Part shown: piece after piece, positions 1,648 to 56,170 of the stretch
How positions within the stretch are numbered: the first letter of the stretch is position 1
Layout: each line of letters begins with the position of its first letter
Origin: Eukaryota sp. TZLM1-RC
Lineage: Eukaryota; Protista; Metamonada: BaSk clade
Direction of reading: 5' to 3'
Assembly (NCBI GenBank): GCA_040285825.1
Contig: JAUPSS010000001.1
Span: 3,038,001 to 3,102,000, forward strand
DNA length: 64,000 bases
The notes under the pieces: generated by a model
The model's input: the letters and a program-made list of their open reading frames with translations, nothing else
The model's database searches: none
Told to the model about the DNA's origin: nothing
Made by a program: the position numbers and the translations under genes

Positions 1648-1711
1648 TGAAATTCACAGTACATCAAATCTCCAGTCACTTTCCATTATACTATCTCTTT
1701 ACATAGTATAA

Positions 1712-2467
1712 ATGAACTGTGAAGTGTGTTGTGGATCATTTCAAAGGGAATCGAGGATGCCTCTAGTCATATGCAAGACTGGACACAATGTGTGTAGTGA
1801 ATGTGATCCTCAACTACCTTCTTGTCCATTTTGCAGGGATGACCGACTACCATCTACCATCCGCAACTTGGCTTTGATGAATGCAATAGAGGAGCTTAGT
1901 GCTAAATTCAATTCACATAACAATCAACAACAAAATCAAAAGATGAAACAAGAAATATCAATCAAGTCGTTGGTAAACGGTGTTTTCTTCACCATTATCA
2001 GGATATTCATCCTCTTCTGTGTTATACGGGCGTTTGTATCTTCGTTTTCCACTGAAAAAAATGTTTCAGTGGATGAAGCGTGGGATTCTATGGACAACCA
2101 ACACTTGGACTGTGATACTAGACTCAAAAATGCGTTACACCAGATACATTACTATTCCAAATTGGAGAACAACTCAATCTGCAGGATATTGAAATCACTA
2201 TCTGATATTCTATTTTCCGTAATACGTCAATTCTATAATGGTCTGCATTTTCTAGCGCGTCTTGTGCTTCGTTCTGCGGGTTTTCTTTTGACGACAGTGA
2301 AGACGTTTGCCCCAATGTTTATTAAGTTCCTCTGTCATTCAATTTTCCTGGTGATTGCGAAGATTGGAAAGTTGATTCTTACAATAATGCTCTACTTTGT
2401 GGAACGCCTACATCGTTGGCTTGACAGTGCACATGAATACGTAGGAAATGATGCTGGGGAGTTGTAG
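1712..2467 (+). CDS. N-terminal RING-finger protein with hydrophobic (putative TM) segments
   Basis: CEVC-x14-CKTGHNVCSEC-x6-CPFC RING pattern; hydrophobic stretches near aa 90-112 and 200-230. Confidence 0.75.
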   Translation: MNCEVCCGSFQRESRMPLVICKTGHNVCSECDPQLPSCPFCRDDRLPSTIRNLALMNAIEELSAKFNSHNNQQQNQKMKQEISIKSLVNGVFFTIIRIFILFCVIRAFVSSFSTEKNVSVDEAWDSMDNQHLDCDTRLKNALHQIHYYSKLENNSICRILKSLSDILFSVIRQFYNGLHFLARLVLRSAGFLLTTVKTFAPMFIKFLCHSIFLVIAKIGKLILTIMLYFVERLHRWLDSAHEYVGNDAGEL

Positions 2468-3462
2468 GGATGACCATTTTGTGGTTTGTAAATAATTTTT
2501 TTAAATCATTTTACTGAATTTTTCATTTCAAGAGATTGAAATTTGTATAGAATTTACTATTAACGCGCGATATTAACAGGGTGTATGTTCATTTACGGCT
2601 GTAGATATTTAGTATATGACCAAAACCATTCACTTTGATTAGATCAATACATTAGCATAAAAAACCATTTAATACAAGAATTGTACCACATTTTGTTGTG
2701 AACAAATTATGGTTTGATACATTTGCTTTCCTTGAATGGATCTTGATCCAGACCCACATTAATTAGTTCCTTTTTTCTTACTGCTTATGCATTAATTTGT
2801 TTGCATCAATCAATCCCTCAAGGTGTTATTTTCCTTATTCTTTTTTGTTTTACTATTTCTTGAACGTTTTTTTTGAAAAAGGTGATTCCAGTCAATTTTT
2901 TTTGGTTGATTTGGGAAATGAAGATGAGTTTTTAAGTTGGTTGTTTAGTTGTCATTGGAATAATTAAATCCTTTTTGGAAAATGTTTAAAAAGTTATGTG
3001 AAGGAAAGTGACTTTACAAGCTACACTAGTCTCATTTCAGTAATTGAACATATGTGATCCGTAGAAACTGATGAAATAGGAGCAGAAGACAGGCCGAGGT
3101 AAAAAGTTGTTCATGTATCCTGATTGCAGCGTCAACATTTCATTATTTCGATTAAAAAGTCTGCAAATGTGATAGTTTTCCAGACCAACATTTTCATACA
3201 CGCACACCAATAAGTTTGAGGTTTATCTTTGTTGTGTAGTTTTCAAATTTACTCAACCCTCTAAAGTTACACACGATTTATGTCGTCTCAAAGTGTGCAA
3301 TTGGAAAAGTTTGCATTCATAGAGGTGGCAATTATAGAGGGTTAACTGTATAAAGAAAGTTGAAAAAAGAAAAATACAAACCAATAACCAGCTGATGATA
3401 CCCTACAATTTATTATACAAATGATCTAATAACATTAAATAATCTAATAGCATTAAATAAAA

Positions 3463-5940
3463 CTAATCAGAACTCCTATAATGGTCACGCAGTAGTTCAG
3501 ATTTTCGCTGAGCAATTAAATTCTCAACCAATTTTTGCTGGCTTGTGTGTGAACTAAAATTATAACCAAAAGAACTTCCTTTTCGTGAAGTAGCTGGTGA
3601 TAACGCTCTCCTTCTCAGGACTTCGTTTGACTCGGTCTCAGGTTTTCTGGTATCATTTGATTGAAGTGCCACAACAGCAGCATTCACCAGTTTACGTAAT
3701 ACCTCAACTTGAGCTGCAGCGCCCTGAGTATCAGAATTAGACAGTAAAAGGGCAACATTATCAACTAAAACACGTATTTTCATTTCCATTATTGTTTTTA
3801 ATGCTTCTCTTTCCTTTGAAATTTTCGAAAGATAGGGTGACTGACTGCCTTGATCTTCAGAAACAGTGAAATTCACCTCAACTGATTGATTTTTCTTTTC
3901 AACAGGATTCTCATTGACTTTTTTGATTGAAGGAACGGTAATTTCAGAGTTATTTTCAGTTTCATACAGCTCAACCTTCTTCTTTAAAAGTCCATTTTCT
4001 TGCTTTAAATCGGCAATAACATCTTTCAGCTCTGCCACTTTATCTTGAACTTCGGATTTAACCAAGTCTTCTAAATTTGATTGTAAAAGGGTGTTTAGGT
4101 TACTGACTTCGGCTTTTAACGACTCGTTCTCTTTGTACAAATTCGCATTAGCATCTATATTTGGAATTTCACCACTATCTGACTGTCCTTTCAGCTCCAT
4201 TAGCATTTTTTGAGTGGAGATGACTTCAACCATTTTCTCATCAAATTGTTCCTCTAATTCCAACTGTTTTCCTTGGTATTTCTCGAGCTCTTCCTCTAAT
4301 AACAAGATAGTTTCGTCTCTTTCGTTCAGACGGGCGGTTAGAGCAATCATAATGTCTCGTTGTTTTAGCAATAGTTGCTTATACTGTCCAATTTGGTCTT
4401 TATCTGCTTGTAGAGATTGTCGTTCCTTGTCAAGTTCAGCTAACTTACTCTCATAAAATCTCTGCAAGTCCTTTGACTCGCCTTGACCAGCTTGACCACG
4501 CTTGACTTCTCCACCATGGCCTAGGAGCTGGCTCTGCATGGTTGAAATCTTTTCTTCTAGCTTCTTTTTTTCTTGTTTCTCTAGCAAAAATTCTCTTGAT
4601 CTCGATTCTAATGCAACCAAAGCAGCAAGCTTATCTTCTTCAGCTCTTCTCTTCTGCTCCTCAAGTTCTAGCACCTTACGTTTATCCACAATATTCTGTG
4701 ATCTGGTGGCCAATTGAGATCTTAACTTAGCAAGCTCTCTTTCGTATTTTCTCAACAAAGCCTTTTGATCCAAGTCTTCATTAATACAAGCATCATTTTG
4801 AATATTTTTCGCCCTATTCGCAAACTTTAACGTGCTCAAACTTTCATTAAATGACTCCAAAGCAGGAGAGATCATGGCCATCATGACTGTCCTGCAGTTT
4901 CCTCCCAGAGAATCTTCTAAAACTCTAGTAAGTTTGGAGTCGCGATAGGGAATATGGCTTCTTGTCTTTGTTTGGTCTGTGAGCGCAGCAATGACATTTC
5001 CCAAAGCGGAAAGTGATTGATTGATCTTTTTTGATTCATCCAATCGTCTGCCAGTCGCCCTTGTCAATCGAACTCTTTCCGAACCAGCTAAATCAACCAA
5101 GTTAAGCTTGCCGATTCTAAAACATTGTTCCCGCGAACCACTACTGTTAAGATTACCGTCCTCAAGTTCTTCCAATTGCTCAACAATAATCATAAAGATG
5201 GCGTGGGACCGTGAACTGACCTCATTCATTCTGGTTGAGGCAGTGGCTCGAAAGTGACTTCCCCTCTCCATTAGACCGTAAATCTCGGCTGGGGTACGAA
5301 CAACCCACTCTGAAAGACCCTCAACATACACTCCCTTCTTCCTATCTTCCCGAATAGAGAGGTTGCTCTTATCAGGAGAGAGAAGATCTGAGATTACTTC
5401 ATTGTAGATTTGAAGATAGCTTGCTCTAATTAAAAACTTCATGTTGGGAGATCTGCAGTTTTTGATAAAGGAAAAAATCTCTTGTATGGATCTTGGTATA
5501 ATACCCCTCGACTGCTCTCCCAAACCTTCCATGGTGAAGGTCTTACCTGTTCCAGTCTGTCCGTAGGCAATGATGGAAGCGTTGTAGCCAAGAAGAGTGG
5601 AGAGGACAGCAGTTTTGGCAGTGGTTTCGTAAACATCAGATTGGGAAGCATTTTGGTCATAAACATGGTCAAAAGTGAAGGTGTGGGTTGAGTATATGCC
5701 AGAAGGGCTACCGTTTTCGGAGTCTCCAGAGAGGTTTTCAGAAATGGTGATCATTCTGCTGTTTCTGTCAACCTTGACTACAGGACGATAAGGACGTCCA
5801 TTGGATCCAGCGAGTTCACGGTCTAGTGGAGGACGAAGACGGATGACAACAGCAAAGTTAGAGGTTGAGACATCTTGGAGAACACGGCGTAAAGACTCTA
5901 TATCACCACGTTCAACTATAGAACGTAGATCGTCAGACAT
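3463..5940 (-). CDS. N-terminal motor kinesin (kinesin-2-like) with coiled-coil stalk
   Basis: GQTGTGKT P-loop, NEVSSRSHA switch I, LVDLAGSER switch II, HIPYRDSKLT. Confidence 0.95.
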   Translation of the reverse strand: MSDDLRSIVERGDIESLRRVLQDVSTSNFAVVIRLRPPLDRELAGSNGRPYRPVVKVDRNSRMITISENLSGDSENGSPSGIYSTHTFTFDHVYDQNASQSDVYETTAKTAVLSTLLGYNASIIAYGQTGTGKTFTMEGLGEQSRGIIPRSIQEIFSFIKNCRSPNMKFLIRASYLQIYNEVISDLLSPDKSNLSIREDRKKGVYVEGLSEWVVRTPAEIYGLMERGSHFRATASTRMNEVSSRSHAIFMIIVEQLEELEDGNLNSSGSREQCFRIGKLNLVDLAGSERVRLTRATGRRLDESKKINQSLSALGNVIAALTDQTKTRSHIPYRDSKLTRVLEDSLGGNCRTVMMAMISPALESFNESLSTLKFANRAKNIQNDACINEDLDQKALLRKYERELAKLRSQLATRSQNIVDKRKVLELEEQKRRAEEDKLAALVALESRSREFLLEKQEKKKLEEKISTMQSQLLGHGGEVKRGQAGQGESKDLQRFYESKLAELDKERQSLQADKDQIGQYKQLLLKQRDIMIALTARLNERDETILLLEEELEKYQGKQLELEEQFDEKMVEVISTQKMLMELKGQSDSGEIPNIDANANLYKENESLKAEVSNLNTLLQSNLEDLVKSEVQDKVAELKDVIADLKQENGLLKKKVELYETENNSEITVPSIKKVNENPVEKKNQSVEVNFTVSEDQGSQSPYLSKISKEREALKTIMEMKIRVLVDNVALLLSNSDTQGAAAQVEVLRKLVNAAVVALQSNDTRKPETESNEVLRRRALSPATSRKGSSFGYNFSSHTSQQKLVENLIAQRKSELLRDHYRSSD

Positions 5941-9207: not shown

Positions 9208-11269
9208 GTATTTGTTGCTTTTGAGTGCAGGTTTGCTTACTTCGTATTCTACAATTGCTGTTATTTGTATCCTGCGCTAAGATTGAGTCTTATAGTGTTT
9301 CTCACATTGTATTTATGTGATTAGAATGTACATCAATGTTCAATGCCATACATAATAATGGTAATATATACAATAAAAGAGGATTAAACATCTTTTTACA
9401 ATTAGGAGGATGAAAATGGGAGTTTCAGGACATTTTGTAGGCTAACGGTACCATTTTTCAAGGAAACAATGCATGTTTCCTTCTTTGTTTCAACCAAAGT
9501 AAAGCACCACTTGTTTCACTCAAATAGCACAATCAATTGGTAAAGGATTACGATTTTCCATATTGCAATTTAGACAAATAAAGCGTCAGGGTGAATTAAT
9601 AACAAAGTCTCTAATGATATAACAACAAATACAAGCAACAAACATTAAATTAGACAACTTTTTCAGAAAATGATAGCAATTGTTTTGATATTCTTTTATA
9701 TTTTGCAAAAATTTGGAAATATCAATTTCATTTTGGTCTGACGAATTTGTGAAATAGAGTCTTTGTTGAAAATAATGTTTTTCCAGTTATCTCCATTTAA
9801 CTTCTGAAGAATTATTGAGATAACTGAATGAAAAAAAGGGGAAGAGGTCTTTGATACTATGTGGAAATTAGCAATCAATTTGAAAATGTAATTGGCATGT
9901 CAGACATCATTTCGATCAGCGAAATTTTTTGACACTTCACATTCTTGTATTGCACTATTTTGAGTCATAATGTGGGTGCTGTTGAATCAGTCATGGGTTC
10001 AGTTAATTCGGATATGGGATGTTTTTCTTGTTTCTGTTGTGTTTTGAATTATTATTATTATTATGTTTTTGAATTTGTTAATTTATGTGGTTTAGGTACT
10101 TGCACTATAGATATGGGATGTTTTGTCTCTAATTGTTATTCTGATATTTAGTTTGATGATTATGTTTATAATTAAAGCCAGTAGTTTCCAACACCTTAGC
10201 GATGTTGAAACAAATTTTGGTTCCAATTAGAGAAGATCCAATTTTATATCAACTTCTTTATCAAAAAGATTTAGACAAGAGACTTTTGACCAACACGCCA
10301 AAGCGTCATCGAAAAAACAGCCAAAATCACTAAAGTGAAAACTTTGTATTGATACAAGGTTGAATATCGAGAACAGGAAAATTTTAACAAAGAAACAATT
10401 TAAATCAAGTCTGGTTAAAATATTTGAACCAACTCTTAGTGGTTTCAAGCCTAATCCTTTATTCAATTCAAATCAATGACAACAAATTAAAATCTTCCCA
10501 CTGTTATGTGCTGTGATCTTGAAACCTATCAGGATGGTCATCTTTACAAAAATCATGATGGCCAACTTCTCCCTCCTGTTGAGATCATCAATAAAAGAAA
10601 AAAGATGGTGCAAATTTTTTGAAAAGAAGAACTGATGAGCAAATGGATGAGTGGATTTATATGAGCTCAAAAAATATTTATAACTTCAAATGTTGTTGGA
10701 CGGTTTGGACGCAATAATTTCTTTTTGGAAAGTAGATAGTCACTTATATTGACATTGAGTCTTCAAATTACCAGAATTTCGAACATTTATATGGATATTC
10801 AGGCAGACATATTCTCCGAGGAAAACACCTTGCTTCGTAGGTTCTTAAACAAAATTGGTGATCATCAACGTCATCGTTTTTTTAATCACAATTTGATGCA
10901 GTTTGATGTACTGGTTTTACAAACAAGATTAAAATATTTTGATTTAGCATTTCCCACTGTTCCAGATGAAACAGCAATTAATGCACTCAATCGACTTTCA
11001 CCAAGATGAAGAGAAGTTGTCATCAGAGAAAATGGCTTTTATATTTTAGACACACTGGTTTTTGCCAAAAAATTCACCCAAATTCAATATGTTTGTAGTT
11101 TAAAAATCTAGCTGAGAGAATGATGAGTGAAAAGAAAATGAAATCTCACCAGGAATTTATCAATATTTTACATGTTGATTGTTTAGTCACTACTTCACTA
11201 AGAAAAAAATATTTGATCCAATATAGGCTTCATGTTTGTGTACTCTCGAATTTTTTGTATTTTTTTCAA

Positions 11270-12327
11270 AAAGATAAGTATGTTTTGAAATCTTATAAAA
11301 CCATTCGTGAAACCGTCAACTCAATTGTTAAACATTCAAATCTGATACTCAAATTGTGAGAAACTGCTTCAAAATTTCAACAGTTACGAATTCATACTAC
11401 ATGTTGCTTAAAGCTGTATTTGCAGTCCCGATTTGAACGTAATTTACTACTGCCATATATATCTGTATAGTTATATGAATCATTAATGGCCGGAATTCGC
11501 TATATTTCATCTGAGTTTTTTGGGCAACAAATGGTTAAACCAATAAGTGCATTTCCACAGGATTTTGAAACCTTTGTCTAAGGTGAAGGAGTTTATACTT
11601 TAAGAACTACCCTTGGGCAACAAAAGTTAAACGAAACATTGAGTCATCTTGATCACTTGAGACACATTCCTGAACTGTTTCCTAGTTTTCCAACTGATGG
11701 ATTCAGTAGACCTGCCGAGTACATAAACCCAGTATTGTTTGCCAATTTTGAGAATAATTTGAAATTGAATTATGAAAAACATGTCAAGGGTTTCATCAAT
11801 GTTTACTTTGACAAAGCAGATGTGGAAAACGTGTTAGCAGAAATGCACAAACTGGGTGGGTACTAAACGTCATTGCCTGCTGTAATTTCATTATGTTCAG
11901 TTGCTGCATTTCAGCAGTTTTCTCAACCCAAAAAAGACTCTTTAATAGGAACGTGTGATGATGCTAAAAAGTTCATAGAATTTGAAACACCACAGACCTT
12001 TCGCGGCATTGGATGATATCAATTTCTGAAAAGAAATGGATTTGAAGTTTTGATGATTAATGAAGCTTTCATTTCAGCAGAATGTCCTGTTTGTTTTGAA
12101 AAGGTTGATAAGTGAGAGTGACAAATCCCAGATTCTATAAGAGAGAAAAGACTCCAGTTACTACATGTCATGGTTAATTAGCTTGTAACAGTGAGAGTTG
12201 CAAACTCAGTAACCAAGGCTCAACAGAGATTTTCAATGGAAATAAGCTGGCTTGTCTGAATATGTTTGCAATTGCTGAAGGTAGACTGAGTGGTGATAAA
12301 AGGCCTCAGTATCTGTGTAGCAGATAG
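11270..12327 (+). pseudogene. Fanzor (TnpB-family RNA-guided nuclease, Fanzor1-like) pseudogene with a large internal deletion
   Basis: Manual translation. N-terminal: YKTIRETVNSIVKH..IHTTCCLKLYLQ..LLLPYI and ANFENNLKLNYEKHVKGFINVYF. C-terminal: RGIG*YQFLKRNGFEVLMINEAFISAECPVC (RuvC-II E plus CxxC), a frameshift, then RVTNPRFYKREKTPVTTCHG*LACNSESC and IFNGNKLACLNMFAIAEGRLSGDKRPQYLCSR* (degenerate RuvC-III NRD..A.LN, RP.YL tail). Confidence 0.85.
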
Positions 12328-12520
12328 TTTTTATAATTATTCCACACGAAAATTGACCGTGTCCTTATGGGAATTACCCATTTATTTACATGATGACATT
12401 TGTACATCGTTTTCAATATCAAAAATAAATTATTTGAAACCCAAAGTAGATGGTGTAGATGACGAAGGTATTTCAAAAAGTCGTTTTCGATGTGTCCTTG
12501 TTAATCTTAAAATGCATTAA
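12328..12520 (+). ncRNA. Candidate Fanzor omega-RNA scaffold / element right end
   Basis: Lies directly 3' of the Fanzor stop. Short stems: acacg/cgtgt (12344-12362) and atggg/cccat (12367-12381). Positional inference only. Confidence 0.3.
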
Positions 12521-12561: not shown

Positions 12562-13917
12562 TCACGTTACAAACCAGTTGAAAGCATCCAGCAGAATGAT
12601 ATAAATCCAAATAAATAAAAATATTAGGAGCATCTGAATTGCCATGGCTGGAGCAACCTCAACAGAATGGTCTTCCTCTTTGTTCGAGTAGAACCTCGCT
12701 AGGGTAAAAGCCGCTGTGGAGGCAGGAGAGGCAGAATAAATCAACACGACACGAGTTTCAGGCCCACTAAGTCCGAAAAGCAATGCAAAAGGTAGAGTCA
12801 AGAGAGGAAACAGAACCTGCTTCCCAAGAACATATGCCAAAACTGATATGTAACCAATCCTACGTCCAAGCCAGTCAAACAGCCCTAGCGATAGACCCAC
12901 CACAAAAAGTCCAACTGAGATCAGAAATATTGATACACTAACCATACCCGGTGTAGCTGTGGCTGCTAGTGAGGAGAAAAAGAACGTTATAGTTAATGGC
13001 AACGTTATATTGAGCAATGCAATGGGAAAAGCTATCACACTAGCCAAGAACAAAGGTGACAAAGCCGTCTTTAGAGAGGCCTTCTTTACGGCTTCTTTAC
13101 CACCATGTTCAGGTACTCCATCAGGTGCTTCTACGGGGTGACCAGGAGATACGTGAACGTGATGAATAGGATAATATTCTTCCTCCTGAATCTCCATGGC
13201 TTCGTCCACCTCGGGAAGAAGGTGTTCTTTGTGGGGAGCGGTGGTTGTGCCACCCACTGATTGACTTCCCACTTGATCTGTCTGTATCTCTTTGTTAGAA
13301 TGATGTGGAGAGTCTGATGGAGACGCACGAACTGGTGGTCCCCTAGGAACTATGTCAATGTTATTCAATTCGAACAGAAAAATGGCCAAGGGAATGACAA
13401 ATACTAATCCTGGGAGTAGCCTGAGGTCAAATGACTAAAGCTACACAAACGTATAAACAACGAATTCATTGAAAAAAGGAGGATCATCTGTGATAAAATC
13501 CTAGATGTATTGAACAAACCTGGGAAAAGTCTACAATTAGCTGAATATGCACCAGACACACGCTTGTACTAAAGGTCTGCCCAACACGGCATTCGATCCA
13601 AAGGTCGTGGTCAGTGCAATTGCTGCAAAACCAGCAGATGTAAATCTGTGAACCGTGAAATGAATAATGGTGAACAGAATTAACATTACCAAAGTTGCCG
13701 AGATCACCGTCAAGATCACAGGAATTGCACGACCTGTAATATCGCTTGGTGCGAGTGAGATGAAAACCAAAGCAGGCAAACCAATCATGTTCACAAAGAA
13801 GTTTAATGCTATCATTGCTTTCAGTTTCAATATATGAAGGAATCCAAGGATGAAGCCCAGTGAAAGTATCAAAAGCAGAGCCCCTGCTATTTCGAGGGCA
13901 GCAACGATTTGGGTCAT
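12562..13917 (-). CDS. AEC (auxin efflux carrier / PIN-like) family transporter, copy 1; introns at 13531-13561, 13488-13519, 13421-13450, 12915-12947; 409 aa spliced
   Basis: LNFFVNMIGLPALVF, GSNAVLGRPLV, TPVGLFVVG, KQVLFP and SASPAST motifs. Removing four GT..AG introns gives a 1230-nt ORF colinear with copy 2. Confidence 0.85.
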
Positions 13918-15262: not shown

Positions 15263-16557
15263 TCATTCTGGAAACCAGTTGAAAGCATCCAATACTATGA
15301 TATAGATCCAAATAAACAAGAAGATCAACAAACTTTGTATTGCTAGTGCAGGAGCAACCTCAACGGAAGGGTCTTCCTCTTTGTTAGAGTAGAACCTCGC
15401 TAGGGTAAAAGCCGCTGTGGAAGCAGGAGAGGCAGAATAAATCAACACGACACGAGTTTCAGGCCCACTAAGTCCGAAAAGCAATGCAAAAGGTAGGGTC
15501 AAGAGAGGAAACAGAACCTGCTTACCAAGAACATATGCCAAAACTGATATGTAACCAATCCTACGTCCAAGCCAGTCAAACAGCCCTAGCGATAGACCCA
15601 CTACAAAAAGTCCAACTGAGATCAGAAATATTGAAACACGAACCATACCAGGTGTAGCTGTAGCTCCTAGTGAGGTGAAAAAGAACGTTATAGTTAACGG
15701 CAACGTTATATTGAGCAATGCAATGGGAAAAGCTATCACACTAGCCAAGAACAAAGGTGACAAAGCCGTCTTTAGAGAGGCCTTCTTTACGGCTTCTTTA
15801 CCACCATGTTCAGGTACTACATCAGGTTCTTCTACGGAGTGACCGGGCGATATGTGAACGTGATGAATGGGATAATATTCTTCCTCCTGAATCTCCATGG
15901 CTTCGTCCACCTCGGGAAGAAGGTGTTCCTTGTGAGGTGCAATAGGTGTGTCACCGGATGGACTACGTTCCATTTTTTCAGTTTGTACCTCTTTAGTAGA
16001 GTAATTCCAAGAATTTGCCGGCAAAGCAAGATTTGGTTTTGGATTAACATGCCTCATATTCTTTCCATATTCAAAGAGGAAAATTGAAAGAGGAACAACG
16101 AACACCAGACCAGGCAAAATCCTGAAGTAAATATTATTCCACTCTCAACATACGTGTAAATTGCATACTCATTGAAAAATGGAGGATCATCGGGGTAAAG
16201 CACTTGCACCAATGGTACACCCAGGACCACATTTGCCCCAAAGGTGGTTGTGAGAGCTAACGCGGCAAAACTTGCAGGTGTAAACCGGTAAATGATAAGG
16301 TTAACAAATACAAAGATCAGCATAACTACAATCGTTGCCATAGTCACCGTCAGCATCACCGGAATTGCACGGGCAGTGATATCGGTGGGAGCCAGTAGGA
16401 TGAAAACCAAAGCAGGCAAACCAATCATATTCACGAAGAAGTTTAATGCTATCATTGCTTTCAGTTTCAATATATGAAAGAATCCAAGAATGAAGCCCAG
16501 TGAAAGCATCAAAAGCAGAGCTCCTGCTATCTCGAGGGCAGCAACGATTTGGGTCAT
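15263..16557 (-). CDS. AEC family transporter, copy 2; introns at 16122-16153 and 15616-15648; 409 aa spliced
   Basis: Tandem paralog of copy 1. A 32-nt GTATGT..CAG intron repairs the frame (YT|ILPGL). Spliced CDS is 1230 nt. Confidence 0.85.
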
Positions 16558-17869
16558 GATGAGCAGCAGAGAAAAGATATTCTACGAACCATTTAACTGA
16601 GATCAAGCAGATATGTCGTGTTGAATAATAACCAAGCATTCTACTCAACTATTGAGGCCTTCCATAACCTGTCATTCATTCTGGTATCAACATTTACAAA
16701 CTTATTCAATCATGTCAACTTATGAATTTTTAAGAAAACATTGTTGAATCAATGTTACTGAAATTTTTCTGATGGCATTTTTCCGATGCTCAAATACCAC
16801 AACAGAACTGATTCAATTCTTTTACATTAAAAGTTCGAATTGAATATTTAGAAAAGTGTTAGTTTTTGATAGGGTCACAATTTACGAAAAATGAAATACT
16901 TAATTACGTCACAATTATGTATTATTTTGTAAAACATAAAATTACAATGACGTGGCATAAGGAAGTGAAATTCAATTACCCATCATCTTGATAGTTCCTT
17001 CACCACGATTTCTCTTTTCAAATCGCATTATCCACTGTGATCCCATGGATACTGACGCTGTGTGTTTTGTTCTTTCAGACCACACAAATTGGAAGGACTT
17101 TTACGTTGAATCTTCAGGGTTAGTGGCTTTATCAACTCTTTCAACCAAATTCCTGAACCAATCTTTGTGTGGCATCTCTGAAGAACGAGGAGAAGAGTAT
17201 AAGAGACTATTGCTTCCATTTTCAGGAAACAAATGATTTTAAAAGATGGATTCTGTTATTCAATTTGTCTATGACAAAGTTCAATTGAGAAAGACTATTT
17301 TTTGTTTTTTGTTACAAAGTGTGGCAGCAAGAGCAGGTACAGCAAGAGGTTACCAAAATGTTAATTATCATTATATCTACCGATTTATCTCTATTTTTAA
17401 ATGCAGTCAATCAACACGAAAGTGACGACGAAGATGATGACTTTGGCAATGCTGTAGCACAAATGCTGCCATGCGAATTATTTCGAATTGATACTGAAGG
17501 AAATCGTTTTGAGGAGTCTCAAAGAACTATACTGATGAAGAAAGTTGCATGCTTTTGTCAGTCTTTTAAATGAAGATCATCGGGTGGTGCAAGGCTTATT
17601 CCACTTGCATAACGTGCTTTAAATCAGGTTGATGATGCTGATGGTCCACATGCTCCTTTATGCAGACTGCAAATAGTAGGGAACTATTTTGTCTTACCAA
17701 CTGCATCACAGTCAAATAGTTTTAACGATGAGATAGTAAATGCAGGTTTTACCCAGCGACCCAGACAGTTATTTTCTCTAATGACAAACAATTTTATTTT
17801 GGGATAAATGTATTTTCCACATTTTAGGTTCAAGATAATCCAAAATCCACCGATTTTCAATAAAATTAT

Positions 17870-20800
17870 ATTTATTGAATTTGCACACTTGATTAAATTA
17901 AATCATAACTAATGGGACGACTATCATTAAACCAAGATTTCCTCTACAAAATCTTGATCTGCTTGCTGTCTAGCTAAAGCTTCTCTAATTCGATTGAAAA
18001 ACCGCGGTAATCTATTAATAATGGCAAATTGAATCCGTGAACGCCATAAAAAAATATCAAATCTTTTCATTGTTTTTTCTTTCACCATTTTTTGGAAGTC
18101 ATCCAAAAAAGTTTCTGCTTCAACTGATAATCTTCCATTTATCGAAAATGGGAAAGCAATAAAAACCAGCTGTGTATTTCTATCGACTTTTGCATCTTCA
18201 ATTTCTTTATCATATTTTCTATGTTTTTCTTTTGCTTTAAAATCCAGAGCAGCCACAGGATTAAGTTTTCTTCTGTGAACCAAAGTATCGTTTGCAACAT
18301 TACATGAGACAAAGTCAACAATAGCTTCAGAATTATCAATCCAATCACAGTATACATCACCTCTATCATCAGAACCAAAATTATTCAGAGAAAGCGTTTC
18401 CTTCAGCAGGGGCTCTTTGATACACGATATCCTTGCAGTTTGTGCCATATTGAAAACAGTGTCTCTAACAGCATCATGTAATGAAGAACGATAAGTTATC
18501 AATTTAGAGCATGGCGCAAAGTGAGTTGAGGTGAATTCGAACAAATACATTTTTATTTTGATAATAATTGGTTAATGGGGATGTTCAAATATAATCTCAT
18601 TTTTGTTACAAATGCTTCATTAGTGGCACACAATCCAAATCTTCGTGGTACAATGGTTACAAACAGTGAAGAATCTGACGCCTTGTTTTCACAAACACCC
18701 TTTTCCAATAACAATGAGTGAAGATCTTGATTTAAAACAGCCGAGCTGCAAATATTATTATAAAGATCTTTTTCATACATTCCAGTCAATCTTTTCTGTA
18801 ATGTTCAAAGAGTGTACTTCAAATTTAAAACATTTTTTTCTGGAATATTGCCATTGAATGATTGGGGAAAACATCGACCCCATTTTTCTACATCAATTCT
18901 TGAAATTTCTTCATTTAATGCAAAAACAGTGGAACTTTGCGTTGTCATCAATAAATCTTCCCAATCTGCAAATCTTTCGGAAAACTCAAAGATTGCATTT
19001 CTGCATCTACCAACAAAAGCACACGAGGTAAGAATAGAAGCCTTCGTCCACCCTAAACCACCATAATGTGGACTAAGGTAAGCATGATCTGGAATTTGAA
19101 ACATTTTACATCCCAGTAATTTTTTTTGTGGATAAATTTATAATTAATTTATTAGTAATTGAGACAGAACTTTTGCACGTAACTCATTAAACTTTTGAGC
19201 CAAAGGTCTAGTGACGAGAGGATTTGTAGATCGAAATATATGATTAAAATTGGAACTAAAACACAGTCTTATAATGGTAAATTTGATGTGTTTTTTTATA
19301 TCTAAATTCATCATTCGGTCAATTTTGTCAGAAATTGAGTTCAACTTTTCAAACAATTTTTTGGTAATTTCATCATTATTTCCTAAAAATGAACCCAAAT
19401 GACGAATAGCATCAATTGAATATAATTTGGCTTGAATTTCAATATCATCAATTATTGTGGAAACTGGAGAATTCGATAACAAAACACATTTAAGTAAATT
19501 AAGTCGGAGACCAATTTTGGTAAATAATTCTTTAAAACATACAGTTGCTTTTTTCACAATATTTAAATCACCAATAAGCACAACATCATCCATATATGCA
19601 ATCATTTTTAGCGAAGGAAACATCTCTTGAATTTGCAGTAGAATAGGATGAATGGCCAAACAAAACAAAAGAGGTCCTAACGGATCTCCTTGCTTTACAC
19701 CACTTGATGAACTCAAAATGTTGTTACCAAAATGTAAATTAGAATATGTGCAATATGTTGATTGAAAATATGGTATTAATTCCGGCATATATTGCAATAG
19801 AGCACCATGGATACTGCGACGACTTAGCGAATTGAAAGCATTACTAAAATCCAATGACATGCAAACATTGGATTCATTTTGACGAAATAAGACATCAGTA
19901 GCAAAAATCGCTGAAGAGACTCCATCTGTAGTATTTATACCATATTGAAAGGGTAATAAAATCTTTTTAGTTTTTTCATTGAACCTGCTTAAGCAACACG
20001 CAGAAAAAATATTGTGTAAGCGCTCAGAGACTGCAATAGAACGAGCATCCATTTTTGAATTTTTGACAAGTGCAGTCAAACGAGAACTTCTTAATTCTTC
20101 TGGGTATTTGCGTTGACCAGATAATATTTGGTTGAAAAATTTGGTCAATAAACCAAGGCAATCTTCTGAAGAAATAATCGCGGCTGTTACATGATCAATA
20201 GTAATACCAGAAAGTCCGGCAGACTTACCACGAGGTCTCTTTTTGATAACCGAAAAAACTTCTGATGGCATCAATGGATAATTTTCCCAGTATGTGCCGT
20301 AAAAATTTTGATCCATTATAGGGTCTTCATAAGGATGAAGTATTTTCAGTTTATCTATTGTATTTTCATTGTTCGGTGCTTTGACTCCGGGACTTAAAGC
20401 TGACAAAGCCTTGGACCGATTTTCCAAGAACATCGTCAAAGTGCACACAGAAACTGCATAGACAACAGAACCCACATAACAACACTTCTCTTTTTGTCTT
20501 GTAGTTACATAAACAACTGTTTTCTGGTTGTAGCCACCAACAACACACCAAGATATTGTGTCTTGATATGGAATCCATCTAATCCCAACACAGGTTTTTC
20601 ATACTAAAATCTTTCAATTGAAGACTCCGGAACAAAGAAGCACTTGTTGAATTGTCCTTCGGCCTCAGATATGCCACGGTTACGCTTCCTATCAACTATA
20701 CCTAAACTAATGGAAAGCTGTTTCTCTAAAACTTTAATCATGGACCTACATCTTTCACGTAAAATGCCATTGTTAAATAGAGTGCGGTGAATAGTACCTA

Positions 20801-40162: not shown

Positions 40163-40479
40163 GCACAAACAGGAACCAATTGGATGTAGAAGTCGATTCT
40201 AGAATGTTTTAGAAATTTCTTGTGCTCCAAGGCCACAGTCCCACACCTTGTTTTCTCTCTGTGGGTGCCGATCTATTTTTGACTTTGGTTTGTTTAAAAC
40301 TGTTGATTACCATGGTCTCATTGATAATGTCATCTGTAATGCTCACATGACAAGTCTGCCACAGTTTTGAAAGTGTTCAATCCACAAACTCCATTTACGC
40401 TTGCAATTGAATAAATGATGGCAGTTCTCTTTGTCTTCAAATGGTTTATCGCTGAATAACCAAAGTTTTTTTTGAAATA

Positions 40480-41270
40480 TATTTATTTATTAAAAAAGTT
40501 ATAAATCAACATCTAAATAATTCATCTCTCCCAAAACTCAACAATTCTAGATGCAACTTTCTCACAGCGAGTTCCAAGAGAAAGCAAAGCATCAGAAACC
40601 ATTTTCTACATCCCCTTCAAATAGAAAACACAATTCAATTTTGCCAAAACAATCTGTTGAAATTTCTGTTAGTTTTTCCCTTTACATTCATTTCAAAATC
40701 ATCCAAAAAACGTAAAGCAGTTGGTGCAAGTGAACCAAAAAGGGAAAATACAAATGGATACAAATTGTATTTTGCATGCCGTTGACTGGACAATGTGGAC
40801 AAAGGTTCATTGTATTTTTTGATTTTGAAATTTTCAGCATTTGAAAGAGCAGTATGAATTTCAGAATTAACAAGCCTTTTATTTCAGGCATTACAAGGAT
40901 CAATAGACATTACATCCATTAAGATACAGGTTCCATTTTAATCCAGGTAATATGAAATCACCTCTATTGTTCTTATGAAAATCATCTCCAGTATCAAACA
41001 GATTTCATAACAGAGGTTTCAAAAAAAGATTCAATTCTATGAGATTTACACATACAATATAACTGGTCTCTTACAGCATCATGAACTTTGCTTCTAAAAG
41101 AAATAAAATGTTTACAATTTAACAAACGAGTAATTGTAATTTTTCGAGAACAATTACAAATTAAATTATGAGGTAAATTATCAGGCCAGATAAAGGAACG
41201 AAATCTTATATTCAAAGTCCAAGCAGAATCAGTTAAGAGAGTGCCATAAACTTGAAGAATTGAGTAACTA
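40480..41270 (-). mobile_element. CRE-like 3' fragment (CCHC-type region plus RLE), decayed
   Basis: RSFIWPDNLP..CNC..LLNCKHF..HDAVRDQL..RGDF; high nucleotide similarity to 52566-53090. Confidence 0.88.
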
Positions 41271-44340: not shown

Positions 44341-45836
44341 TTTCAAACAGTTTCTCCTGGATTTATTTAAAACAGTAAATGTATGATGAATAGAAAGTTC
44401 AATTTAATCAAATAGGAAAACCATTCTATAACCAAAAAGGTCTTTAGATGTACCAGGTTCGGACAACCCGTGTGTTATTCAATGAATTCGTATAGAATTT
44501 TGTTCATGAAATACTATCAATGGATTGAAGAGCATTAATAGCGGTCGAAATTTGTATCATTACTATTGTAAAAAGCAGGCACAAATTGTTGGACTGAATT
44601 TTGTACTTGTTTCAGAACGCCAAATCTGTCATTGAAAACTAACCCATTGGGTTCTCCAAGTAATCTTGATAATTTCAATAATTACTGCAAACGAAGGATA
44701 AGAAAGAGTGCTATGCACTCCCTCAAAAATGGATATTTCAATTCTTTTTTGCCTGAGAGTTCAGTCAAAAATTCGTCGGGTTCAATTTTCAATAATTATG
44801 GAAAAAATGGGGATGTTTTAGCCAAGAATTTAAAGAGGAAGAAAGCAAAATGACAAAAAAATGTATTGTGTGTGAGTTGATCTTCAGATTTGTTTTTTTC
44901 ACATTTGAGCTCTACATATAAGACAGTGCAAGTATTGCCCTTAAAACATTTGAAATATCAGGAGATTCTACAATAGTTAATAGATCACAGCCTAGAATCA
45001 CCGCAAATCCTTGACTATCAACAAAAATCAATTCGTCAGAGTGAACAGCCAAATTGGGAAACCGTAATTCTTAAAACACTTAAAAAATTTTTCAGCTAAC
45101 ATTATGTACTTTTAACAAATAAATTAATAATAATTCAACAATTAGTATCAACAGAATGAATTGGAGTGACAGTCTTTTCATATTTACAACTGTGATCCTG
45201 TGGAACAATGTAAGGCCAAATCAATGATTGAATGCGCATGGATGATAGAAAAAAATGGGAGGCACTGTTCTCTCTGGATTGAAGAATATATGGTTTTGTA
45301 GATGCAACCCCTATACTTGAACAATGATCTACAAAATGGCTGAGTATATGAAATGATTCACCAGGTCTGATATAAGGATCTTTATGTTACCATTCATTGA
45401 CACCATTGCTCCGTTAAGTATTTATTGCAAAGGCATCATTGGTGTATTTGTGCTTTAGTTTTACGTTATTCATGTGAGAAAAAATTAGCCATGATACTAG
45501 ATATGAAGAACATTTCCGCTAGATAGCCTCCTTGCCGACTAAAAAAGGAAACGTTATTAAAAATTTGAAAGTGACTTAAAGATTGGTCTTTCCCTAAGAA
45601 ATTACTTGACACTGCAACAATCAGCTCTTTGCGGTTGTGGTGTCCTCATCAGTGTTCTATTGAGATGAGAGTTCGTCAATTTTTGATTTTTCCACGAACA
45701 ACAAATGCCTAAAACCATTATTTTTAAACTGTTCTACAGGTCTTTGTTCTGTAATAATCATTATCGCTCAAATATTTTGACAATCATATATTATTGTATT
45801 CATTCAACAACAAATATGAAAACATAAAATACACAA

Positions 45837-46900
45837 TTAAAATTCCACATCCTCAAAACCTGCTTCCCCTGAATCAAAACAAATAATTGCTCAAGATTCG
45901 GAAAATTTCCCAAAAAAAGAGAGTGAACCAGAAATTAGTTTTACCATTCCCTTAAAAATAGAAAATACAATCCTGTTTTGCCAGTAAACACGATTGAAAA
46001 TTCTTCCAGTTCTTTCCTTTACAACTTCAAAAAAATCCTCAAGGAAAACCATAGCAGCCATACCTAGAAATCCAAGCAAAGAAAAAACAAAGGGACATAA
46101 ATTATATTGGGCGTGAGAATTTTCATTAACCGAGGAAAAGGGTTTCGCATATTTAGCAACTTTATTTTTTTCGCCTGCAAAAAGAGGATTATTTACATCC
46201 GAGTTAATGACATGTTCGTTAGAAGAATTACAAGGGTGAGTAGACATGGCGTCTAAAATAGTAAAACTTCCATTTGTACCAGGAACAACTAGATCACCTC
46301 TTGTCAGACCCATAAAAGCTCTGTTGTAACGCTTACTGTCAATATTGGGGTCATCAAGAATTAATTTTGATAACAACGGCTCTAAAAAGGAATCTACTCG
46401 ATATGAATTGCACATTACATAAATTTGGTCCCTCACGTTACTATGCACTTTGCTTCTAAATGTAATGAAATGTTTACAGTGCAAAAGATGAGTAAGCAAA
46501 GGAGATTTACCACATTTACAATTTTAATGGTTGGGCAAATTGTTTGGCCACAGAAAACAACGAAAACGCATGTTTAAAAGCCATTCATTGTTTTTCAACA
46601 AAAGTCCATAAACAGAGGAAATTGAGTTACTAAAGCAGCAGCAGAACTTTCCCGAATGTCCTTTAAAAAATAACCGAAAGCGGGATTTTCAGTTTTGGCC
46701 AAGCCAAGTGTTACTTCATAACCCAAGCCTTCAAATAATTTAACCAGATGGTGCTGAAGCTTTTTCAGGCAAAAACGTAAATTTAGAAGTGATCGGGTGG
46801 GAATTTCTTGAACATTTTGAGGAAAACACTGAATTCAGATACCACTAGGCAAATTATCTAATTCAATTTGAAGTTGATTCAAATAAAATTTTGATTCACC
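45837..46900 (-). mobile_element. CRE-like 3' portion (CCHC-type region plus RLE)
   Basis: MRFRCFLWPN, HLLHCKHFITFRSKVHSNVRD, RGDLVVP..ILDAM..KVAKY, WQNRIVF. Confidence 0.88.
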
Positions 46901-51927: not shown

Positions 51928-52565
51928 AGTTTTTTGGTTTTTTAAATAATTTAAATTTATAAATGCTTGTATTTTGATGATTGTTTGCTAATACTTTTTT
52001 TTAATCAGATTATTAATTGATAAGTGAATCACAGGTGCTGACGTTTTTTTGTTACTTCAACAAGTCTATATTCATTTATTCAGAGTTTAGGGTTAATTGA
52101 CAAATCGTATATTAGTTTTCCACCATTGTTAATATTGGAACTCCTGTATTCACATTGACATCTGCTGTTGAACAATGTATTCATTCCTATAGAAAATCTA
52201 TGCAATATGATAAAGAGTTTGCCTCAGATATTGTTTAGAAATATGGTGAATTCAAACAAGAACAATTTAGAAATCAAAAGTATTGGACTATCGTTCATGT
52301 GAATTTAATGGAGATTGGTGACACAATAACAACTGTTGTAGCAGTGTGGTGAGCAACAGTATAGCTGATTCCAACTACATTTGAATTTCAAAATTTGAAA
52401 AAGAAGTTCTCTCAATTCCATTAATTTTATTAAACAAAAGATGTTGAAATACAATTATTCAAATAGAATTCTAAATCGTTCTTTTTTTAATTTTCAAGTT
52501 TATCAATTTTTAGGATCAATTCTGCTTGTACCTAGGATTTGTTTTTTAATTTTTGTATTAAAAAC

Positions 52566-53090
52566 CTATACATCAACATCTAAATAATCCATCTCTCCCA
52601 AAACAAAAACACTGGACGCAACTCTCTTATAGTGAGATCCAAGTGAAAGCAAAGCATCAGAAACCATCTTCAACATTCCCTTATAAATAGAAAATATAAT
52701 TCTATTTTGCCAAAACAATGTGTTGAAATTTCTGTTAGTTCTTCTCTTTACCATCATTTCAAAATCTGCCAAGAAACGTAAAGCAGTTGGAGTAAGTGAA
52801 CCAAATAGAGAAAATACAAATGGATACAAATTGTATTTTGCATGCTGTTGGCTGAGCATTTTGGACAAAGGTTCATTGTATTTTTTGAATTTGAAATTTT
52901 CAGCATTTGAAAGAGGATTATGAATTTCAGAATTAGCAAGCCTTTCATTTGAGGCATTGTTTTAATTTTATTTTTTTACAAGGATCAACAGACATCAAAT
53001 CCAATAAAATGAAATTCCTTTCTAATCCAGGTAATGAGACATCACCTCTATTATTCTTATGAAATTCATTTTCAGTTTCAACTAGATTTG
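52566..53090 (-). mobile_element. CRE-like RLE 3' fragment
   Basis: RGDVSLPG, YNLYPFVFSLFGSL..FWQNRIIFSIYKG..GEMDYLDVDV; same subfamily as 40480-41270. Confidence 0.88.
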
Positions 53091-53146
53091 ACAAATCTTC
53101 CAGTCAGAAATAGAAAATGTTCCTCATTTAATTGAAGCATAAACTC

Positions 53147-54970: not shown

Positions 54971-56170
54971 GGCACAATGGCTATTTAATTATTATTGATA
55001 ATTATAATAATTATTGAAAAAAGGTGATTTTGGTCAAGATTCAAATATTGTCTTACAACCTCACAAAGTAACAGATAACTTAAATTCATTGTAGAAAAAC
55101 TAGTAATAAATAATAATATATCTATTCAATTGCTTGCATGATTTAAAAGCTTTTTCATGGATTAAACCAAATCTAGATGAAGATATCCAAGATTAATCTG
55201 AAAATATTTGAGTAACCACTGTTGATGCTTCTCAAAATCTTTCATATGGAGTTCTGAGTACTGAAATTCTGATGAACATTTCCTTTGGTTTGTAAAAAAA
55301 GAAGAATTCTCATTGTCATGGGCACAGCTTATTTTCATTGATAGATAGGTTATAGTAATGTTGACTCAAGAATGCCATGGTTGTTGTCTAGTCATGAAAT
55401 TTAAAACTGATGAATTAAATTAACAATCAAGGTAGTTTTGGAGCTATTGTATTCTCGAAGCGTATTTGAGGAACTTCAAAGTCAGTAGAAAACTTCTATT
55501 TTATTTTGATTTTTGTATTGTATTTTTTAAAAAAAAACTTTTGAGACCGATCTACAAATGCCTTAGTAGCATTTGGTAGAACCACTTAGATACATCAAAC
55601 AGATAAGTGACGTCATCAACACTATACTTGGCCCTTGGAGGAGGAGGAGGAGGAGATGACTGTTAAACTTTAAAGCCAAAAGATTCATCAGCATGAGGAG
55701 CTTCTCTGGCCAAAGACTTTGTTCAAAGATTCATGAAATATGTAACAATCCATTTTGTGCTAAAAATGTTGAACAACTGGCCATATTGGAATGAACACCT
55801 ATTAAATAAATTCTCAAATTACATTTTATTAAACTTACACAATTGACAAAACGCAAGAAAATGTTTGGAGCCAATTTAATTAATTAATTCGAATTAATTC
55901 CCAAATCATATTTGTTACATATAATTTGTCTGATAAATTGAGTGGTTTATGCTGACATCAGGTATGGTGACAGACAGGGCATCCGAACCTGAATCCAAGG
56001 ATATAGGTTTCACTCATAGCAGCGTTAGCATTTACCGTCATAACATTTCAAATGAAAACCACAGGAAGTCATAATGAAGAGTCATATGAATACATAATTA
56101 TTGAACATGCACAGTTTTTGGAAACCATTCCACAAGGTTCCTGTTTCCCCGAGCTGCTGATATTAATATC

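Follow-up and report, generated by a model that had tools for sequence, protein, structure and literature searches.

Structure of the locus

The window, a stretch of 64,000 nucleotides from TZLM1-RC, the protist Skoliomonas litria (PMC11603281), carries a decayed gene on its forward strand (Table 1). Read from the sequence, the order of this gene is leader, 2A, NLS, Pol delta-type 3'-5' exonuclease and Fanzor1. The initial annotation had read 11270-12327 as a hidden Fanzor relic, and all the peptides quoted there were recovered on the forward strand, at the positions given, by six-frame translation. On present sequence evidence, this relic is almost certainly a dead copy of a Fanzor1 gene belonging to a mobile element of Skoliomonas.

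Table 1. Features of the decayed gene copy, its right end and a second relic in the window
Feature	Position	Strand	Evidence and remarks
Cys-rich leader, 5' part of element	9850..10200	+	DNA match to copies L001B (9850-9945) and L005 (from 9961)
Decayed 2A (StopGo)-like DVETNFGS, then worn basic NLS-like patch	10201..10245	+	Motif scan
Decayed Pol delta-type (family B, DEDDy) 3'-5' exonuclease	10500..11260	+	Pfam and family HMM
Fanzor1 N-terminal (WED/REC) part	11267..11894	+	Four stops; sister-copy, HMM and P0171-SpuFz1 matches
Deletion junction	11894..11910	+	~1.2 kb gone: rest of REC, WED, RuvC-I DPG, bridge helix
Fanzor1 C-terminus	11910..12327	+	RuvC-II Glu 12062, CPxC 12083, frameshift 12112, NPR, HG-L-C zinc motif
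Fanzor1 C-terminus, end	11910..12327	+	RuvC-III Asn 12241, RP-YL, stop 12325-12327
Candidate omega-RNA scaffold 3' part and right end	12328..12380	+	Stem-loop 12344-12362; terminal TG...CA stem-loop 12368-12380
Predicted guide (unique host flank)	12381..12396	+	No family coverage beyond ~12415; SpuFz1 analogy (PMC10432273)
Second, older tail relic of the same subfamily	16590..16800	-	68-70% identity to L003 tail, E=7e-7

Searched separately, the window pieces gave no significant match in Pfam or PDB; the top matches were Cas12f1-like_TNB in Pfam (E=0.11, below the cut-off) and PpFz1 in PDB (E=0.76). The Fanzor1 identity, which was borne out, therefore rests on ORF matches of sister copies and on HMMs of the family and its relatives. 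A sister-copy C-terminal ORF, 69-75% identical to the window pieces, matched PpFz1 (E=1.4e-11) and SpuFz1 (E=2.3e-4). An HMM of 36 relatives with a RuvC-III Asp, which included no member of the skoliomonad family although its sequences had been retrieved by a profile including the window pieces, matched the window at 12115-12321 (E=3e-16) and 11993-12112 (E=1.5e-7), far above the reversed-window control (best E=0.5). As judged by these profiles, the Fanzor signal in the window is far beyond chance. For the N-terminal part, a 94-aa window piece matched one protein, P9112_011146 (P0001) of TZLM1-RC, at 72% identity, the family HMM covered 10856-11842 (E=4e-35), and the equivalent region of the intact relative P0171 aligned with the SpuFz1 N-terminus. 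The TnpB-like C-terminal features (RuvC-II Glu, C4 zinc finger and RuvC-III Asn) are all present in the window copy, which grouped with the skoliomonad Asn clade at 99% SH-aLRT in a quick tree without labelled Fanzor references. An endogenous giant virus or Polinton was rejected, as the neighbours are host genes and retroelements and include no capsid, packaging ATPase or full polymerase.

The copy is dead, as had been proposed. Six stops lie within 11270-12327 (11357, 11468, 11579, 11864, 12014 and 12175), and the frame changes at 12112/12113, where the window is 4 nt shorter than the sister copies; short-read contigs identical to 11457-11607 confirm that two of the stops are real. Over the whole reading path, 10201-12324, we counted 13 stops and three frame switches. 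A large deletion removing RuvC-I had also been suspected, and 1174-1200 nt are indeed absent between 11894 and 11910 in comparison with L001A and L005. The deleted stretch corresponds to positions 414-817 of the family model and includes the RuvC-I DPG, which is absent from the window copy and kept in the sisters L001A and L001B and in intact relatives. Between the window copy and its closest sister, L005, dN/dS was 0.9-1.07 in every segment, a value of about 1.0 that fits two dead copies. L001B resumes at most 2 nt from the start of the window deletion (L001 19021 versus window 11894), after a MULE-like relic at 19144-20084; this agreement of breakpoints may be a coincidence or may mark a breakage hotspot.

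A Pol delta-type exonuclease upstream of Fanzor1

The 5' boundary of the relic had been set at 11270, but the gene starts at least 1.1 kb farther upstream; sister homology reaches ~9850. The 2A and the PolB-type exonuclease of the same gene had been missed. Family-like contigs start at ~9860, where other copies continue differently, and the true left end of the window copy is lost or diverged. The leader (9850-10200) had no Pfam match. At the site of the window 2A, just upstream of which the window lacks 39 nt, L005 reads NVEANPGP followed by KKRR; the motif is exact (DVEANPGP) in P0166, P0170 and P0179 and degraded in the window. Unlike P0166, P0170 and L012, the window copy has no Ulp1 protease between the 2A and the exonuclease, and none was detected upstream.

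In the exonuclease part, the window retains ExoI as D10515/E10521, ExoII as N10890/D10905 and the ExoIII Tyr (Y11222), and the ExoIII Asp is changed (11234). The piece 10740-11006 matched Pfam DNA_pol_B_exo1 (E=1.2e-4), the family HMM covered 10623-11381 (E=1e-16), and the best PDB match of the family exonuclease profile was Pol delta (E=9e-12). An AlphaFold model of the exonuclease alone was of low confidence (pLDDT 50).

Sister copies and intact relatives

Five sister copies, 75-85% identical in DNA to the window copy, were found in the S. litria assembly, two at the P9112_011146 locus and three more by profile search. A parent lineage had been supposed to exist in the same genome, and near-intact P0179/L012 and L010 of S. 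litria agree with this. The further supposition of an active parent family gained near-intact relatives, but these form a sister subfamily (~30-50% amino acid identity to the window pieces) and not the direct parent. The 1233-aa 2A-NLS-exonuclease-Fanzor of P0179/L012 carries a single 1-nt homopolymer frameshift; L010, 98.4% identical to L012, has a different 1-nt homopolymer frameshift in the Fanzor part; because the assembly is nanopore-based, these frameshifts may be errors or recent mutations. RuvC-I of this near-intact subfamily reads DLG, not DPG. L012 (5690-11727) and L010 represent a young subfamily with the order leader-2A-Ulp1-2A-NLS-exonuclease-Fanzor.

Intact exonuclease and Fanzor occur together in Skoliomonas sp. 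RCL, in P0006 (KAL0221781.1), P0158, P0159 (KAL0210696.1), P0170 and P0171 (RCL1_006714). With P0006, P0159 and P0171 available as intact natural proteins, reconstruction is unnecessary. In L002, L006, L007 and L008 the last 970 codons are free of stops, with exonuclease and Fanzor in one frame. Both domains of the intact relatives are under purifying selection: among the L002, L006, L007 and L008 copies, overall dN/dS was 0.18-0.33 and stayed under 0.45 in either domain, and among young copies the exonuclease gave 0.13-0.43 and the Fanzor part 0.20-0.34.

By sequence (phmmer), P0171 matched SpuFz1 (E=5e-24), PpFz1 and Pol delta (E=3e-6). Its structural model, with pLDDT mostly 80-95 in the Fanzor part and below 50 in the exonuclease, matched SpuFz1 best (E=1e-29, TM 0.81), with SpuFz1, PpFz1 and GtFz1 spanning 1e-29 to 5e-18, compared with 5e-3 for the Fanzor2 ApmFz2 and 1.5e-3 for TnpB. 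P0171 is thus predicted to have a Fanzor1-type fold and extensions, distinct from Fanzor2 and TnpB. The exonuclease motifs ExoI DxE, ExoII Nx3FD and ExoIII Yx3D are complete in P0006, P0171 and P0179, and the P0006 exonuclease matched Pfam with E=2e-13; ExoI is lost in some relatives (P0166).

GEM-RC1 contains members of the family in their Fanzor part. Among the non-skoliomonad matches none had the exonuclease, and among the matches listed, within the length window applied, there was no full-length homolog outside Skoliomonas. The 5' cargo differs between copies and includes a helicase, Ulp1 proteases and tandem repeats. L002 (4001-10084, P0158) is an intronless ORF of 2027 aa with a DEAD/DEAH-type helicase and exonuclease-Fanzor; the helicase splits the N-terminus, which L006 and L008 have in one piece. 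Extra decayed family tails lie near intact copies at L006 1598-2116 (-) and L012 5017-5547 (+), the former with a co-oriented ATG ~170 nt past its stop.

The RuvC-III Asn

The initial annotation had counted the reading NGN in place of NRD at RuvC-III as a sign of death, which applies only to the Arg-to-Gly change. The Asn was present in every family member holding the region, and the Arg before it was changed in the window copy only. RuvC-I Asp and RuvC-II Glu are conserved in the family. GtFz1 is known to cleave with a non-canonical D-E-N triad, and the D606N mutant of SpuFz1 is more active than the wild type (PMC11423790). Since the RuvC-III Asn is family-wide and matches the active D-E-N triad of GtFz1, we do not regard it as decay. 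In a quick tree, Asn at this position also appeared in several separate branches, so close kinship with GtFz1 is not implied.

Right end, candidate omega-RNA and genomic sites

Sister-copy homology ends at 12380, where the contig of another copy also diverges, 53 nt from the stop of the window copy. Several subfamilies with unrelated tails have the same layout: past the stop comes one stem-loop and then a second, terminal one of the form TG...CA, whose end lies 42-83 nt from the stop and has T or C next to it. The TG...CA two-hairpin end was found by script in 9 of 13 copies and recognized by eye also in the window, L005 and L008; it is missing in L001B. The right-end hairpins show little covariation within the subfamily of the window copy, and the fold score was not significant for the window (z=-0.7) and was z=-5.1 for L002. 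No RNA run was found to contain this stretch of the window. By analogy, this layout fits an omega-RNA scaffold with a guide in the host flank.

In four of the six copies in the subfamily of the window copy, the end lies 22-64 nt upstream of a host ATG in the same orientation, belonging to Utp11, RIO1, Med10 and a Sec1-family gene. At a background of 1-10%, such proximity has P ~1e-3 or lower, in a small sample. The second relic in the window (16590-16800, -), whose end is ~30 nt upstream of the start codon of AEC transporter paralog 2, and the L011 copy also fit this pattern. Young-subfamily copies mostly do not end at gene starts, and docking at a start codon was rejected for the window copy itself, which is followed only by a 12-codon ORF lacking a Pfam match, the next gene being tail-to-tail. 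The proximity may reflect targeting or selective retention. The end of the second relic coincides with the point at which the two AEC paralogs cease to match in their upstream regions, and paralog 1 may represent its empty site. In L011 (8001-9056, P0013), a Fanzor stump without right end lies ~35 nt before an MTA/SAH nucleosidase-like host gene and in frame with it; P0013 is annotated as one fusion protein of the two.

No transposase, RepHel, TIRs, matched termini or TSD was common to the copies in 12 loci, whose left ends were not located, and no TIR or TSD was found around the window copy. Likewise, no TAM, left end or empty site was found for family copies. The MULE-like relic of L001B and a DDE_1 transposase beside L006 were rejected as the element's own; they are absent from other copies and were treated as separate insertions.

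Possible function of the tethered exonuclease

We consider it quite probable that the anatomy described above is correct and that the parent was an active nuclease-exonuclease. In a live parent, ribosome skipping at the 2A would free NLS-exonuclease-Fanzor, which would bind an RNA made of the element 3' end and ~15 nt of flank. If it behaved like SpuFz1, which cuts 16-21 nt from the TAM (PMC10432273), this RNP would cut an allele lacking the element at ~16-21 nt inside the flank matched by the guide. The TAM-side end would then be left with a short 3' tail unable to pair with the element-bearing donor; the tethered exonuclease would trim this unpaired tail, and host recombination would copy the element in, a homing process as proposed for TnpB and Fanzor. 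Because Pol delta proofreading can shorten an invading 3' end by up to 40 nt (PMC10868807), a tethered domain of Pol delta type would suit such trimming. By this analogy, a role of the exonuclease in trimming the 3' tail after the cut, enabling the element to be copied into the cut site, is plausible, with a chance somewhat short of even. The complete scheme is more tentative and rather unlikely to hold in every part: an active D-E-N Fanzor1 and a tethered exonuclease, both from a 2A polyprotein, would cut and trim for self-assisted homing with little or no transposase, one subfamily preferring sites a short way upstream of host start codons. The window copy performs none of these steps.

Alternatively, the same fusion might serve destruction, the exonuclease chewing the cut ends against clean re-ligation and so destroying element-free alleles or rival elements. 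We hold this to be rather unlikely, even though SpuFz1 leaves 5' overhangs that a 3'-5' exonuclease would widen and engineered fusions of SpuFz1 with exonucleases are tried as a route to higher editing (PMC13434818). The homologous repair that spreads the element would itself suffer from long 3'-5' resection. In addition, proofreading-type domains usually remove short unpaired ends only, which counts against such chewing.

It is improbable that the exonuclease sets guide length by trimming the omega-RNA at its 3' end, or that it only binds nucleic acid. A guide extending into host flank needs trimming, DEDD enzymes include RNases, and the absence of ExoI from some relatives would suit a trimming or binding module; the nearest solved relatives, however, are all DNA polymerase exonucleases, the D-E-N-D-Y-D residues are kept in three subfamilies, and guide maturation in other Fanzor1s does without such a domain. 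Slightly less probable still is a weak or dead RuvC in a protein acting near gene starts as an RNA-guided DNA binder, either a regulator or a targeting factor for a trans-transposase. Such a binder would account for the RuvC-III Asn in all members, for DLG in one subfamily and for the ends just before host start codons in four of six subfamily copies, the second window relic and L011. Against it, GtFz1 cleaves with D-E-N and SpuFz1 gains activity from D606N (PMC11423790), RuvC-I Asp and RuvC-II Glu are conserved, and the young subfamilies are mostly not at gene starts. A stand-alone Fanzor1 relic beside unrelated exonuclease-like DNA, suggested by the two parts not sharing an open frame in the window, deserves almost no credence and is refuted by the colinear sister copies, since DNA homology to L005 and L001A is continuous across the exonuclease-Fanzor junction and intact relatives hold both domains in one ORF.

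Comparison with known systems

The skoliomonad relatives share domain order, fold, the C4 zinc motif and a DPG-type RuvC-I with SpuFz1 (8GKH/9CEU) and PpFz1 (9CF0). No transposase in cis was found in the skoliomonad loci, and Spu-1 has none either; its structured region from stop to right end is 75 nt long, compared with a candidate region of 53 nt in the window copy. In contrast to SpuFz1 and PpFz1, the skoliomonad family adds an N-terminal Pol delta-type exonuclease, a 2A-headed polyprotein and the RuvC-III Asn, and no terminal inverted repeats were found in it; the window copy, moreover, is dead. GtFz1 of Guillardia theta (9CER) has the D-E-N triad in common (PMC11423790), but its sequence and fold are less similar (E=5e-18 and 14% identity to the P0171 model), and no exonuclease has been reported for it. 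The exonuclease shares the ExoI, ExoII and ExoIII motifs with that of Pol delta (3IAY, 6S1M), whereas in Skoliomonas it stands without the polymerase domain and has an RNA-guided nuclease as its fusion partner. Unclassified Fanzor1 elements such as Mucor MCi-2, and the Helitron2 elements CRe-1/2/3, similarly combine a conserved 3' part and 3' hairpins with variable 5' cargo and no recognisable TIRs (PMC3627910); no exonuclease fusion is described for them, and no Helitron RepHel was found in the skoliomonad elements.

The window copy is an ordinary pseudogene, Fanzor1 relics being common, and the novelty lies in the exonuclease-Fanzor family. No natural exonuclease-Fanzor fusion was found in four core Fanzor papers or in searches of full texts, which cover few subscription journals, and the Skoliomonas genome paper does not mention Fanzor. 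The family makes the role of a Fanzor for its transposon testable, as an exonuclease mutant would separate cutting from copying. It also provides a second lineage for tests of the D-E-N triad and a natural counterpart of the fusions engineered for editing.

Neighborhood of the window copy

Downstream of the relic, tandem Mem_trans (AEC) transporter paralogs lie at 12562-13917 and 15263-16557 (-), their last exons being ~91% identical. Copies of a CRE-like non-LTR retroelement were found at 17869-20475 (-), 1-1570, 40466-41262, 45800-46830 and 52538-53094, and in L001B, L010 and L012 exonuclease-Fanzor elements are interrupted by near-identical CRE-like copies (95-98%). L001 also contains an unrelated Fanzor/TnpB-like split gene (1691-3640, -) with a RuvC-III Asp and a Pfam TNB match (E=1e-6); it lies directly upstream of a co-oriented WD40 gene and has a 97% match to window 55534-55598.
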